Positions 42,826 through 52,505 are shown, numbered from the stretch's first letter. The stretch is DNA of 64,000 nt from IMGVR_UViG_3300034073_003340:248001-312000, one strand, 5' to 3'. The notes: generated by a model not told the origin, from the letters alone. Numbers and translations are program-made.

Positions 42826-43248
42826 TTAACGGGCCAGAACCATCATCTGACCGCCGTCCTCCGATGCCCAATAGATCGACTGATTGTTGAAGCTGATGGG
42901 GTTGAGATAGCGGCTAATGAAACCACGCGAAGGGTCTACGACCGTGCCACGCTCACCCAGATTATCAGCCAGCGCAGTCGCATGGGAGATTGCGTCAACG
43001 AGATTTTCGAAAACAAACGACGGATTCTGCCAGGGGGTTTTATTATCAGTCGTCTTATAGAGAAAAGTATCAGCGGCACACATGATATGACCACCGGCAA
43101 TACCCTCAACCAGGATACGCCATCCAACGGCAACTTCATGCTTTCCGGTCTTGATGACCTTGACCGTGCTGCCGAAACGAAGTTCAGTAACATTCGCAGC
43201 ATACTTGGCGATAAAGGCCTGGCTGACTGCGTCGATCTGGTTGGTCAT
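42826..43248 (-). CDS. Hypothetical protein
   Basis: Early promoter, AGGAGA RBS, terminator. Confidence 0.65.
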   Translation of the reverse strand: MTNQIDAVSQAFIAKYAANVTELRFGSTVKVIKTGKHEVAVGWRILVEGIAGGHIMCAADTFLYKTTDNKTPWQNPSFVFENLVDAISHATALADNLGERGTVVDPSRGFISRYLNPISFNNQSIYWASEDGGQMMVLAR

Positions 43249-43314
43249 AAAATGTCTCCTTGTTTGCTGTCTACTCACCTGTTTTAACAGAAATAGGTGA
43301 GTAGTCAACCAGAA

Positions 43315-43905
43315 TTATCCAAGAAGTGACCTAAAAGTCAAAGAGATTCTCGACTTCGACTGAAAGCCAGCCTTGGGAATCCTGTGCTGATGCGTGGACT
43401 GAAACCCGGCGGGCATCAAGCAAAGCGATCCCTGTTCCAAAGGCTGATCAACAACCGGACCATAGGTCATCTTGCCGTCGACTTCACCTAGTTTTTCGCG
43501 GAACTGAATGCTCCTCGGTTTGCTGGATCCTTCGCCACCATACAGCGTAACAATTGCGATGGGCTTGGTATGATCGATGCCGGGGTCGTCATCTTCATGC
43601 CAACCCAACCAGTCATGAGCACCCTCATATCCGTTGAGGAAACATCCCTCAAAGTCCACAAGCACCGCAGCATGGTTCATGAGAGCCAAGGTACATTCAT
43701 CAATCACATTGTGGGAATCCTGGCTGTGATAGGTCCGGAGACCTGCACCGCGACCATAGGAATAGTCCCGACCAAAGATGTTGGTCCAGTATTCCCTCCG
43801 GGGAGCATCGCTGCGCCGTTCCCAGTTGAGCCCATTCCAGAGCTCATTGAACATCTCGGCCGCTCGTTCGACGCTGACGAAATTAGGAATGTAGATTGCG
43901 CTCAT
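43315..43905 (-). CDS. alkB: AlkB-like 2OG-Fe(II) dioxygenase (ALKBH2/3-type)
   Basis: CFLNGY, LGWHEDD, HQHRIPK, RISLTFR. Confidence 0.9.
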   Translation of the reverse strand: MSAIYIPNFVSVERAAEMFNELWNGLNWERRSDAPRREYWTNIFGRDYSYGRGAGLRTYHSQDSHNVIDECTLALMNHAAVLVDFEGCFLNGYEGAHDWLGWHEDDDPGIDHTKPIAIVTLYGGEGSSKPRSIQFREKLGEVDGKMTYGPVVDQPLEQGSLCLMPAGFQSTHQHRIPKAGFQSKSRISLTFRSLLG

Positions 43906-43965
43906 GTCGATCTCCTTTCAAACTGGAGATAACATGAAATAGAATGGTGTCAACCATCAATGTTT

Positions 43966-44006
43966 TGGTAGGCCCACCGGGAATCGAACCCGGACCATCC
44001 GCTGAT
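43966..44006 (-). pseudogene. 3' half of an interrupted tRNA (Ile-like ends)
   Basis: CCGGG-TTCGATT-CCCGG T arm then TGGGCCT-A-CCA. Confidence 0.75.
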
Positions 44007-44099
44007 TGGTGGAAGTGCCCGGACTTGAACCGGGATCGTCGCCTAATCTGGGCTTTCGCGAGGTATAAGCTCACCCGCTCTACCTTGAGCTACACTTCC
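44007..44099 (-). tRNA. tRNA-Ile(UAU) with long variable arm
   Basis: GGAAGTG/CACTTCC-ACCA; GTGAG-CTTATAC-CTCGC; GCC/GGC variable stem; 93 nt. Confidence 0.8.
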
Positions 44100-44102
44100 A
44101 TT

Positions 44103-44810
44103 TTAAAGTATCTTTTGTATTTCAGACCAACAGAGTTGATCTTTTGATAACATCAAAACCTTAATACTATTTTGATTTGAAACTAGTTCAATCTTTCTAC
44201 GGTCTTTTCTCATCAAGTATGGATTTTTAGGATCTAAGTAGATCCTATAGTCCGGTAAAAAGAAGTCTGGTATATACCGTCTAGTTTGACCTTGATCATC
44301 AATGTAAGAGATAGATGAAGGTCGTATCCACTTGATCTGATGCTTATCTAAATCTTTGGCAAGAATAAGTTCGTACGAGCTGTCAAGTAAAATACCGTTG
44401 TATATAGTCCTCTTTGAGTAGAATGGTTTCTTCAATAATCTGTCTACCATCAACTTAGATAATTTGTCTTTAGTCTTTAGACTGTGTGTTTTAGGATCAT
44501 TCTTCTGATAGAATAGGGTCAATGATTCATGTTTAGTTCTAGTCTTTAAACCACTTCTCAGAAGAGTCGCAGTAGTCACGTTCAACTTTTTCGCTACTTC
44601 TCGAATTGTGAAACCGGAATCATATAGTTTTTGGGCTTCTTCTTGATCCAAAATAGAAACACCAATGGGCCAGTATATTGCTCCTCTGGCTTCAGCTTTG
44701 GTAATTGCCATTGGAGAGAATCCAAAGTTCTTTGCTACCTCAACTCTCAGGACTTGAGGATTCGAATCTATAAAATTTTGGATTTTAACCCAATCAATAC
44801 GCTTAGTCAT
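44103..44810 (-). CDS. Putative homing endonuclease (HTH + PD-(D/E)XK, TnsA-like)
   Basis: SGFTIREVAKKLNV HTH; LDSSYE, YIPDFFLP..IYLDPK; AT-rich relative to flanks. Confidence 0.8.
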   Translation of the reverse strand: MTKRIDWVKIQNFIDSNPQVLRVEVAKNFGFSPMAITKAEARGAIYWPIGVSILDQEEAQKLYDSGFTIREVAKKLNVTTATLLRSGLKTRTKHESLTLFYQKNDPKTHSLKTKDKLSKLMVDRLLKKPFYSKRTIYNGILLDSSYELILAKDLDKHQIKWIRPSSISYIDDQGQTRRYIPDFFLPDYRIYLDPKNPYLMRKDRRKIELVSNQNSIKVLMLSKDQLCWSEIQKIL

Positions 44811-44836
44811 AAATGCTGGTCTTGGTATTCATCCCA

Positions 44837-44868
44837 AGACCCCTGTTCTACCATTAAACTATAGGCCC
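44837..44868 (-). pseudogene. 5' half of an interrupted tRNA
   Basis: GGGCCTA-TA-GTTT-AATGGTA-GAAC-A-GGGGTCT; acceptor strand pairs with 43970-43976. Confidence 0.7.
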
Positions 44869-45257
44869 ATGTGTTAGAATATATACGAAGCCTGGGTGGC
44901 TATCTCATACCAAAGTGGCTTGAGTTCATCAATGATGATATTAACTTGGTATTGGCAAACTTCGTCAGGTATATTCTGCATCATAGCATCTCTTAATTCC
45001 TCGGCCATTAATTCCAAGGCTCTGAATGGATACTTTTTCTCAACCCAAAGCGGCATAACATGACAGACCAAACCGACAACAATAGCGTCGAGAGCTTGAT
45101 CTGGCGTGAGAAGCTCACGCCTTATAGAAGCGGGAGGAGCCTTGGGTTCAGGCAAGCGAAAGTCTAGAATTTTTGCCACACTTTATTTAGCGGGCTATAA
45201 CTCTAGAGAGGACTTTAGCCTCGTATGCTCTCGCGCATTTGACTTCCTTACAAAACT

Positions 45258-45333
45258 TGGTGGCCCATATGGGACTCGAACCCACAACCGACAGATTTTA
45301 GAGATCCCTGCTCTACCATTGAGCTAAAAGGCC
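45258..45333 (-). tRNA. Amber suppressor tRNA (CUA)
   Basis: 76-nt cloverleaf; loop CT-CTA-AA; CCA encoded; one mismatch each in the acceptor and anticodon stems. Confidence 0.8.
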
Positions 45334-45378
45334 ATGCTCTCTTTATGGAGTCGCATGGCCCTTTTGTCAACCTAAGAT

Positions 45379-46140
45379 TTATTCCATACCGGCTGGAGTC
45401 TGTGGACGCCAGTCATCCCAACCATCGGGAGTTGTGTAGCCAATTCGCTGTAGATAGGCTTCAGTGTCTGCTACACTCGTGAAGGATTCAATCTCTTCCG
45501 AGGACAGAGCGACGTAAAACTTACCAAGCTCGTAGTGGACCTGGGCAGGCGCATACATGGGATCACCCTGGTAGATTGCCGCATAACCTTGGTCCGCTTC
45601 AACTTCCCAATCGGGGACGACGCTTCCAAACAATTTGATGTTTTCCTCGGACTCATTCACCAGGTCAACGTATTTGGTGCCAGGCTTGGCCTTTAGAAGC
45701 TTCTTGTGCCTTGCCTTGATTGCGTTGAGTGCTGCGGCCATAGTTGGCTGAGTTGGCAGTTGAAACTTGTGATAGTTGCTGGCATACCAAGTTGGAATGA
45801 AGCCACCGTTTTCAGAAGCTCTGACTTCGCCCTTGCAGACGTTATCAAGTTTGTCCTTGTTGGCTAGATAGTAGAGACCAGCAGTCTTGCGTCCAGGATA
45901 GATGCGAGCTTCGTAGTCGCCGGACTTCTTGACTAGAGTCTGCTTGCTTTTGGGAACAGGCTTGGGCGCTGGCTTTGGTGCCTGGTTGGTTTGGGCCGCC
46001 TTCCTTGGCTTAGCCTGCCAACCACACTGTCCACAATATTCATTGTCATTGGCAATGACTTCGCTTTCCTTGCCAAGATAATCGCCACACTCAGGGCAAT
46101 TGTAATCAGTGGCTTCAGTTACGATTTCTTTCCAGCGCAT
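45379..46140 (-). CDS. Putative virion internal protein with Zn-ribbon
   Basis: MRWKEIVTEA leader, CPECG/CGQCG, TAAATA upstream. Confidence 0.55.
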   Translation of the reverse strand: MRWKEIVTEATDYNCPECGDYLGKESEVIANDNEYCGQCGWQAKPRKAAQTNQAPKPAPKPVPKSKQTLVKKSGDYEARIYPGRKTAGLYYLANKDKLDNVCKGEVRASENGGFIPTWYASNYHKFQLPTQPTMAAALNAIKARHKKLLKAKPGTKYVDLVNESEENIKLFGSVVPDWEVEADQGYAAIYQGDPMYAPAQVHYELGKFYVALSSEEIESFTSVADTEAYLQRIGYTTPDGWDDWRPQTPAGME

Positions 46141-51649: not shown

Positions 51650-52505
51650 ATGAAAGGTTGAGAATACACCTTTTACAAAACGTCTTCGAGCATTATCCCT
51701 GGCTTCTGACCAGTTTTCTCTCGATTTCCACTAAGCGTAGCCGAAGCAGTCACTTAGTAACGTTCCAAAGCCGCCAACTTATAGACCGCTGGCATTAGCG
51801 GTGTCCTTACGGGCCTTTCGGTAGTGTCTAGTTACGCCTGGAATCGCTTCCAGTTAAGCGGCCGCTAAGCCACAACATACCCTCTTCTACCAACACTAGT
51901 AGACGTTTGCCCCTACCAGTGTCCCTGTTAGCTTGCGCCCAGGGAATTAGGCTTTTTCAGCCTCGTAAGCGAGTCAGGCTTTCATTTTTTGACAGCTATG
52001 TCTAAAACAGCTATGTTTAACCCATTGCGATGTGCTGACTCAGTAGCTTCAAAGGCTTTTGACCTCCAAAATACTACACACCACGTATCTTTCGCCTTGC
52101 GGGGCTACTTGATCAGTTTTCAAGAACTGTAACACACGGCTGAACCCGTATATTCCAATCCTATCAACTTGCCACTTGCCCTTGGCGCGACCCTCGGACT
52201 GTAGTGACTATCTCTTCCCACTTGGTACTGACCATATTTCGCTGGCGACGTTGGGGTGCGAAACCCATTATCGAGCCATCCGTTGGACCACTCGACGTAT
52301 ACCGCTTTCGCGGAACAGTCATCCTATGGCGTCCTACCTATCTCCGCAACCCGTAAAGGCCCGAAGAGCTATCTTTTGGATAGCAGGGTGAGACTTGCTT
52401 GTTATTGACCTATATTGCTATAGGCGAGACCTATTGGGTTTCAGCCCCTTTCCCTAAGTTGCCCCAGGTTATCTGCTACAAGCAGCAATCTCTAATCTCT
52501 TGAGC
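51650..52505 (-). ncRNA. Large structured ncRNA, GOLLD-like
   Basis: ~855 nt without a credible ORF, between a TTGACA-N17-TACTTT promoter and a terminator at 51620-51649; many GNRA-capped hairpins; GTGGTGTGTAGTATT..CAAAAG and GTGTATTCTCAACC segments recall GOLLD. Confidence 0.7.

Follow-up and report, generated by a model that had tools for sequence, protein, structure and literature searches.

The locus described here raises the question of how a complete tRNA gene, together with a putative endonuclease gene, came to lie between the two halves of another tRNA gene. It is found in a stretch of 64,000 nucleotides (nt), in the following called the window, which originates from a huge phage contig of 435,856 bp (IMGVR_UViG_3300034073_003340), and it comprises a 903-bp block (44868-43966) on the minus strand, from which the whole region is transcribed. 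We consider it likely that this block represents a tRNA(UAU) gene inactivated by a homing endonuclease cassette which sits between anticodon positions 34 and 35 and which carries a working tRNA(UAU) of its own. The cassette is composed of a short hairpin leader, a 235-amino-acid (aa) endonuclease gene and a complete tRNA(UAU) abutting the open reading frame (ORF). An earlier reading of the DNA, in the following the original prediction, had listed a tRNA 5' half, a hairpin, an ORF with helix-turn-helix (HTH) and PD-(D/E)XK nuclease parts, an intact 93-nt tRNA and a tRNA 3' half. All of these parts are present, arranged as follows:

44836-44868, minus strand: 5' relic left from the disrupted outer tRNA(UAU) gene, corresponding to tRNA nt 1-34
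44818-44841, minus strand: 8-bp hairpin with an 8-nt loop, arms GGTCTTGG (44841-44834) and CCAAGACC (44825-44818)
44103-44810, minus strand: gene of a putative free-standing homing endonuclease, 235 aa, including the stop codon
44007-44099, minus strand: inner intact tRNA, 93 nt, anticodon UAU, found by ARAGORN and by the Rfam tRNA model (49.9 bits)
43966-44006, minus strand: 3' relic of the outer tRNA(UAU) gene, directly after the CCA of the inner tRNA

The 5' relic reads GGGCCTA-TA-GTTTAATGGTAGAAC-A-GGGGT-CTT and contains the acceptor 5' strand GGGCCTA, the D arm, the 5' strand of the anticodon stem (GGGGT) and the loop positions C32-T33-T34; a hidden Markov model of tRNA 5' halves matches 44871-44835. 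Its last bases pair with the downstream CCAAGACC to form the hairpin, which ends just upstream of the ORF start. The minimum free energy of the whole leader (61 nt) is -16.7 kcal/mol, and the hairpin probably reduces the translation of the nuclease. The relic is separated from the ATG by 25 nt and the stop codon from the inner tRNA by only 3 nt. The inner tRNA has its CCA encoded in the DNA, A73 and a long variable arm with the loop CAGATTA. In the 3' relic following it, A35-T36 come first, then what remains of the variable arm, the T arm, TGGGCCT as the acceptor 3' strand, A73 and CCA. The GC content of the ORF is 33-37% compared to 47-53% in the flanks, and no second copy of the nuclease was found in the window.

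Are the two outer pieces parts of the same gene? The first 24 nt of the 5' relic are exactly matched in five other viral contigs (L015-L019), in all of which they start an intact tRNA(UAU) gene of 94-95 nt ending with ...TGGGCCTACCA; uninterrupted alleles of the outer type, for which a comparison with related phages had been proposed, do exist. They share the acceptor pairing of the outer halves, including the wobble pairs G1.U72 and U6.G67, and the TGGGCCT-ACCA end, so the two G-U pairs noted earlier in the outer acceptor stem are native to the intact gene. Compared to L019, the relics are identical at 31/34 (5') and 34/42 (3') positions, versus only 21-22/35 and 26/41 compared to the inner tRNA or to its counterpart in the related phage L020. 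As both pieces match a single tRNA(UAU) family with intact members, and not two unrelated tRNA genes, the alignments indicate that they derive from one tRNA(UAU) gene, a chance match being excluded. In the alignment to L019, the joined relics show a 20-nt gap right after C-T-T-A-T, which takes the rest of the loop, the 3' strand of the anticodon stem and the 5' strand of the variable arm, and an internal gap is also seen in comparison to L015. ARAGORN calls no tRNA gene in the joined outer halves. Judged from its sequence, the outer gene is a dead pseudogene for which no cloverleaf is possible, and the observation that its anticodon-stem strands cannot pair is explained by the absence of these ~20 nt, which include the 3' strand of the stem.

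Other assignments of the outer pieces were considered and rejected. The 5' half might be taken for a tRNA-Pro(UGG) with the loop CTTGGGA, but the 24-nt match, the 3' relic and the YTT junction found throughout the nuclease family fit a UAU-type gene. The 8-bp direct repeat TGGGCCTA was dismissed as a target-site duplication, as this acceptor sequence is present at either end of the intact alleles as well, where G1 is preceded by a T; what is duplicated are the two halves, 5' and 3', of a single gene, and TGGGCCTA (8 nt) is the acceptor sequence native to the intact alleles. An integrase-mediated island at a tRNA gene finds no counterpart either, the block containing no integrase and the nuclease as its sole ORF. 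A tRNA-Gly(UCC)-like gene with similar arms is present in the source sample.

What the locus looks like without the cassette can be seen in related huge phages, of which four were recovered, i.e. L003, with an oxygenase 87% identical to that of the window, L004, L005 and L020. The flanks used for this comparison are:

44874-45179, minus strand: upstream flank, conserved 101-aa ORF, past whose stop codon tRNA(UAU) starts after 3 nt in relatives
43315-43905, minus strand: downstream flank, 2-oxoglutarate (2OG)-Fe(II) oxygenase gene

In L003 and L020, tRNA(UAU) lies 3 nt past the stop of the homologue of the 101-aa ORF, with a promoter-like TTGACA and then a 263-aa ORF coming after it, and the locus contains neither the nuclease nor a relic. 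L005 shows a divergent tRNA-like sequence at this place, and L004 has no tRNA and no nuclease. The 263-aa ORF is located between the place of tRNA(UAU) and the oxygenase gene in L003, L004, L005 and L020. It is missing in the window, where the promoter region of the oxygenase (GGTTGACA, 43906-43965) comes directly after the 3' relic, as seen in comparison to L003:5122-6000 and L020:775-1640. The nuclease ORF is present in the strain variants L026 and L027. Because the relatives are without the nuclease and differ in their content of tRNA and 263-aa ORF, the comparison indicates that the locus is unusually variable and that the nuclease is an insertion relative to the relatives. The tRNA of L020 is 95% identical to the inner tRNA of the window, with two compensatory changes in the anticodon stem, and the tRNA of L003 has the centre of the molecule in common with it, its acceptor and T arms being different. 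An amber-suppressor tRNA (CUA) at 45258-45333 (minus strand) of the window keeps its position in all relatives (L003:4554-4632, L004:4722-4798, L005:3899-3975, L020:206-284); recoding of TAG, as suggested by this conserved tRNA(CUA), gives no signal in the ORF statistics of the window, TAG ending 7/62 long ORFs.

Evidence for recent movement comes from contigs which share the block in different surroundings. An identical nuclease protein is present on other contigs. In L027, which originates from a different study, 11 mismatches fall into 83 nt of the upstream ORF compared to a single one in the next 787 nt, reaching from nt 1 of the relic through the nuclease. At the other end, contigs of the runs X3 and X4 covering the inner tRNA and the 3' relic show one difference there, versus 11-13 in the ~73 nt past the CCA of the relic. 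The divergence amounts to 13-16% in the flanks compared to ~0.13% inside the block. In X3, the nuclease contig has a depth of ~76x, the contigs with tRNA and relic 466-524x and the backbone ~16x, the depth of the nuclease contig in X3/X4 being 5-fold that of the backbone, all these metagenome depths being approximate, as they were taken from assembler contigs rather than from raw reads. The near-identical block has the same extent as the outer tRNA gene (44868-43966) and is found in several backbones which have diverged from each other, suggesting that it was transferred recently as one unit, with co-conversion bounded by the flanks. Near-identical pieces of the cassette also occur in wastewater and marine samples (runs X5-X12) unrelated to the subsurface source, which suggests that the cassette is widely distributed. 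A 231-nt contig of X8 (wastewater), the only run labelled as RNA, covers window 44035-44265, i.e. the ORF end and the inner tRNA, with one difference; a carry-over of DNA is possible in this case, and we do not use it as evidence for transcription.

The same architecture recurs in the family of the nuclease, for which we examined homologues from Logan, JGI and ENA as well as 80 IMG/VR loci, resulting in a census of 90 loci. A complete tRNA starts -45 to +13 nt from the end of the ORF in 55/90 loci, the remaining 35/90 being without a fused tRNA. The types found in these fusions are Ile(UAU), Thr(UGU/GGU/CGU), Gly(UCC), Ala(UGC) and Pro(UGG/CGG). Often, in most of the 55 fused loci (among L029-L102), the ORF overlaps the downstream tRNA by 7-45 nt, most commonly by 10 and 15 nt, and its stop codon falls within the tRNA; where the overlap is 10 nt, as in L011 (2127-2136), the stop codon is the tRNA's own U8-A9-G10 (TAG). 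In ~30 loci an orphan tRNA 5' fragment is found 10-30 nt before the ATG, and in the loci inspected these fragments run up to the YTT of the anticodon loop (nt 34), where a small hairpin usually comes next. Such a hairpin precedes the ATG in homologous cassettes and often covers the Shine-Dalgarno sequence. Together with the position of the stop inside the cargo tRNA, this suggests a tight, low-level expression of the nuclease. Since these ORFs end inside the downstream tRNA, processing of the tRNA by RNase P would remove the stop codon from the mRNA, possibly acting as a built-in limiter of expression.

Complete nesting, in which the inner CCA is immediately followed by a 3' relic, is also present in L029 (UAU), L048 (Gly, outer acceptor GCGTCTA/TAGACGC), L061/62, L077/79 (GCTGACA/TGTCAGC) and L022 (Ala), and most of these loci have outer acceptor strands which are complementary to each other. 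In L061, no nucleotides were removed: both outer stems are complementary and the joined halves, minus one extra T at the junction, fold as a tRNA(UUU) which reads as tRNA-Lys, so that the insertion is precise between nt 34 and 35. The cargo of L061 is a tRNA-Thr(UGU) inside this tRNA-Lys(UUU)-like gene, and the isoacceptor type of the cargo may therefore differ from that of the target. The earlier proposal that the cassette supplies a replacement Ile tRNA is in line with the window, where a tRNA(UAU) lies in a tRNA(UAU) gene, and needs this qualification for the family. In L021 (640-1320), a nuclease homologue (P0020) splits a tRNA with fully complementary acceptor and anticodon stems, carrying no cargo and having its TGA stop at the junction, which points either to an insertion of very recent date or, possibly, to some form of joining at the RNA level.

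What kind of enzyme does the ORF encode? Its layout comprises two N-terminal HTH modules (~aa 1-86) and a C-terminal PD-(D/E)XK nuclease domain (~aa 132-235, window 44417-44106). Pfam HTH_7, a resolvase-type HTH, matches with E=1.7e-5, PHROG matches are to endonuclease and resolvase families, the profile of T7 endonuclease I gives a weak match (E=0.14), and the Pfam and PHROG scans of the ORF contain no GIY-YIG match. An alignment of 46 homologues shows S144, E147, D182 and K195 to be invariant and D193 to be present in at least 90%, resulting in an E...PD...DxK motif. In the AlphaFold (AF2) model, with a predicted local distance difference test (pLDDT) score of 89.5, the C-terminal domain resembles Bax1 (Z 8.2), VRR-NUC (7.8), TnsA (7.5), I-Bth0305I (7.4) and Vsr (7.2), and Foldseek agrees; values of Z 7-8 are moderate and fall into the 'common' range of the tool, the best matches of this domain being predominantly nuclease folds. 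From motif and model we infer that the ORF product cuts DNA. The homologues in metagenomes number 89, a few of them carrying NUMOD3, and IMG/VR contains at least 210 homologues. Among cultured phages, no close relatives of the block were found at the DNA level, where only the suppressor tRNA was matched, and three distant matches were obtained at the protein level. Distant members lie in the tRNA clusters of Aeromonas phiWae14 and Stenotrophomonas Bhz51, unannotated or as 'hypothetical', and the family as a whole is labelled 'hypothetical' or is uncalled in cultured phages.

These observations support a model according to which, in a co-infected cell, the enzyme would cut the anticodon-loop region of the tRNA gene in a cassette-free genome and the cassette-bearing genome would template the repair of the break. 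The pieces left from the old tRNA gene, 33 and 41 nt in length, would act as homology arms, and the nuclease gene would thereby be copied in together with its cargo tRNA. The cargo would keep the phage supplied with the tRNA, the outer gene being dead, and no splicing of RNA would be needed as the cargo provides the function. As the relics flank the cassette, they would be natural homology arms for further homing as well. The central claim of the original prediction, a mobile endonuclease cassette invading an Ile-like tRNA gene, is supported by the intact outer alleles, the nuclease-free relatives, the near-identity of the block across diverged flanks and the recurring architecture. Full-text literature searches gave no description of a nuclease with a cargo tRNA nested in a tRNA gene.

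Several points weigh against this model. The cut site is placed only from where the relics end, cleavage itself being deduced, and recombination would have to rely on rather short homology arms (33-41 nt). In the inner tRNA the CTTATA loop is intact, a potential target in the phage's own copy, which presumably escapes cutting through differences in the stem or the flanks. It is the inner and not the outer tRNA that resembles the allele of the relatives at this locus (95% in L020). By its sequence, the inner tRNA resembles an allele native to the clade and the relics resemble alleles of other phages, and either of them may have been the resident and the other the import. To this are added the approximate depths and the moderate Z-scores given above, and the presence of the RAP domain and of tRNA-splicing endonuclease folds among the structural matches, so that RNA targets are possible.

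The cargo itself belongs to an unusual and widespread class of phage tRNA(UAU), 91-98 nt in length, with a long variable arm whose stem covaries. Members are the inner tRNA of the window (44007-44099, minus strand), L003:5026-5121, L011:2127-2222, L013:2063-2160, L015:4163-4256(-), L019:6510-6604, L020:682-774 and others, the class accounting for 17/19 distinct UAU tRNAs collected. Mostly they have G1.U72, and they have A73 and an encoded CCA. The 7-nt loop of the variable arm often reads YAGAUUR, in which GAU corresponds to the anticodon of the major tRNA-Ile. For a tRNA of the Ile type, a shape resembling class II would not be expected. A GOLLD RNA (Rfam RF02032) is located in the same tRNA-rich part of the window, at 51655-52084 (minus strand), scoring 164.1 bits versus a gathering score of 150.

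Other explanations of the split gene have to be weighed against the homing cassette. The outer tRNA might still be functional if the nuclease ORF and the inner tRNA were excised from the transcript by a ribozyme of group I or II, a bulge-helix-bulge (BHB)-type endonuclease or the encoded protein. Insertion after position 34, which is the site reported for the group I introns of cyanobacterial tRNA-Leu, would be in line with this, as would the ORF of L021 splitting a tRNA with fully complementary halves and no inner tRNA, the tRNA-splicing endonucleases among the fold matches (Z ~5) and the hairpin, where relic nt 29-34 and the sequence further downstream form a P1-like helix, a G.U pair at a candidate splice site being absent. 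Rfam scans of 43000-46000 and of homologous loci at E<=1, however, gave tRNA matches only and no group I/II intron or other RNA family, as already noted for the intron cores in the original prediction; mascRNA, permuted tmRNA and Plastid-ycf2 appeared as sub-threshold noise. With only 25 nt between relic and ATG and 3 nt between stop codon and inner tRNA, there is moreover no room for a ribozyme core, the outer gene is without ~20 nt including the 3' strand of the stem so that the joined halves are not a tRNA, and the relics at other loci are variously truncated. Removal at the RNA level is therefore extremely unlikely, and the unusual nested precursor once offered as an alternative is not supported: its outer gene, ~20 nt short, forms no cloverleaf and comes with neither a ribozyme nor room for one. 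Unlikely, though less so, is that an ordinary free-standing nuclease gene came to rest in a recombination-prone tRNA array, the relics being debris of unrelated duplications and deletions. Tandem and abutting tRNA genes are abundant in phage tRNA arrays, 35/90 loci have no fused tRNA, the ORFs of L023 and L009 lie simply between intact tRNAs, and SegB of T6 drives the segmental amplification of tRNA segments by recombination (PMC13096335). The window contains a further orphan pair at ~60030-59950 (minus strand) which could be counted for such debris: an orphan tRNA 3' end (T arm and TTTTGCT), a 7-nt spacer and an orphan 5' half (GGCAAAA-TA-GCTCAGTTGGTAGAGC...) with complementary acceptor strands in permuted order, the 3' half coming first. 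This pair could be a recombination scar or a permuted gene; more weak orphan tRNA matches lie at ~63.2 and 63.7 kb. Against debris stand several regularities: 5' fragments in independent, unrelated contigs stop at the same position (YTT, nt 34), 3' relics all begin directly after the CCA of the inner tRNA, outer acceptor strands match each other in most nested loci inspected, and identity drops sharply exactly where the outer tRNA ends on either side.

The coupling of nuclease and tRNA might also serve offence and immunity, an anticodon-loop ribonuclease or a dual DNA/RNA nuclease inactivating the tRNAs of the host or of rivals and the long-variable-arm tRNA(UAU) being the resistant replacement. 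The tightness of this coupling, even to a stop codon inside the tRNA, the unusual structure of the tRNA(UAU) class and the RNA-acting RAP domains and splicing endonucleases among PD-(D/E)XK-like folds would agree with it, and phage tRNAs are known to counter tRNA-cleaving defences (PMC13096335). The relics, however, are scars at the DNA level at the anticodon position, the HTH modules point to binding of double-stranded DNA, and the cargo tRNAs are of several ordinary kinds (Thr, Gly, Ala, Pro), which makes this explanation very improbable. We see a small chance, if a slim one, that the cassette goes beyond a selfish gene and serves as a weapon among competing phages, its nuclease destroying the tRNA genes or the tRNAs of a rival at the anticodon and its cargo being a cleavage-resistant tRNA. 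If so, the long-variable-arm tRNA(UAU) (YAGAUUR loop, G1.U72, A73) would have evolved as a protected or specially charged replacement, and the class might differ from ordinary tRNA-Ile in its amino-acid identity or have a regulatory role.

If the block is a homing cassette, as we favour, it would represent a route by which a homing endonuclease can enter an essential RNA gene without an intron, i.e. by carrying a spare copy. The nuclease family is widespread and so far unannotated, with a footprint, and apparently its recognition, at anticodon position 34/35 of tRNA genes, providing candidate sequence-specific nucleases with a predictable target. For annotation, such cassettes would account for orphan tRNA halves and for 'tRNA within tRNA' patterns in phage tRNA arrays. 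For evolution, they offer a possible mechanism by which phage tRNA genes could be rapidly replaced and exchanged laterally. In most homologues the stop codon lies inside the cargo tRNA, which suggests that processing of the tRNA and expression of the nuclease are coupled.

The proposed cassette combines features known separately from other systems. I-Ssp6803I is the PD-(D/E)XK homing endonuclease of the group I intron in the tRNA-fMet gene of Synechocystis, and both systems have in common a homing enzyme of the restriction endonuclease fold and a target, predicted in the present case, in the anticodon-loop region of a tRNA gene. I-Ssp6803I is encoded within an intron whose self-splicing restores function, whereas the present block is without an intron and obtains this function from a second complete tRNA gene. 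I-Ssp6803I is absent from the PDB sequence matches and from the listed structural matches of the ORF, the closest homing enzyme by structure being the catalytic domain of I-Bth0305I (Z 7.4). In the mitochondrial atp6 element of Allomyces, an endonuclease ORF comes with a replacement gene piece and the resident piece is left as a pseudogene. The cassette resembles it in that the endonuclease ORF carries a functional substitute and the displaced resident sequence is a dead relic. The atp6 type concerns mitochondrial protein genes with an in-frame C-terminal replacement, in contrast to an entire RNA gene here, where in addition the cargo is nested inside the old gene, the carriers are phages and the nuclease belongs to another family. 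In nrdA/mobE of Aeh1 and gene 60/mobA of T4, homing endonuclease insertions split phage protein genes into functional pieces. These share with the cassette a free-standing nuclease gene within, not between, conserved genes; the pieces of nrdA and gene 60 work as two polypeptides, which the split tRNA cannot do, its cargo tRNA compensating for this.

The parallel drawn in the original prediction was to SegB of T4, in function the nearest analogue, a free-standing GIY-YIG homing endonuclease in a tRNA cluster which recognises a motif of the T-psi-C stem-loop and spreads with neighbouring tRNA genes (PMC2330249), an association with tRNAs which is widespread for this type (PMC13096335). This parallel stands as far as the nuclease is free-standing, lies in a phage tRNA region and is absent from relatives, as described for the Seg/Mob enzymes of 'intronless homing' (PMC2330249, PMC2988022, PMC13096335), and fails with respect to the enzyme, which is not of the SegB GIY-YIG type: here an HTH and PD-(D/E)XK fold goes along with a footprint at anticodon position 34/35 instead of the T-psi-C motif. 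Like the Seg/Mob enzymes, the nuclease would spread with neighbouring tRNA genes by cutting the recipient, with co-conversion of flanking markers. SegB sits between tRNA genes and leaves no split gene, whereas the ends of the target gene persist here as relics, and, differing from SegB, most homologues have their ORF fused to the cargo tRNA, the stop codon lying inside it. A variant of intronless homing in which a nuclease with its footprint at anticodon position 34/35 travels together with a complete tRNA would fit the data.

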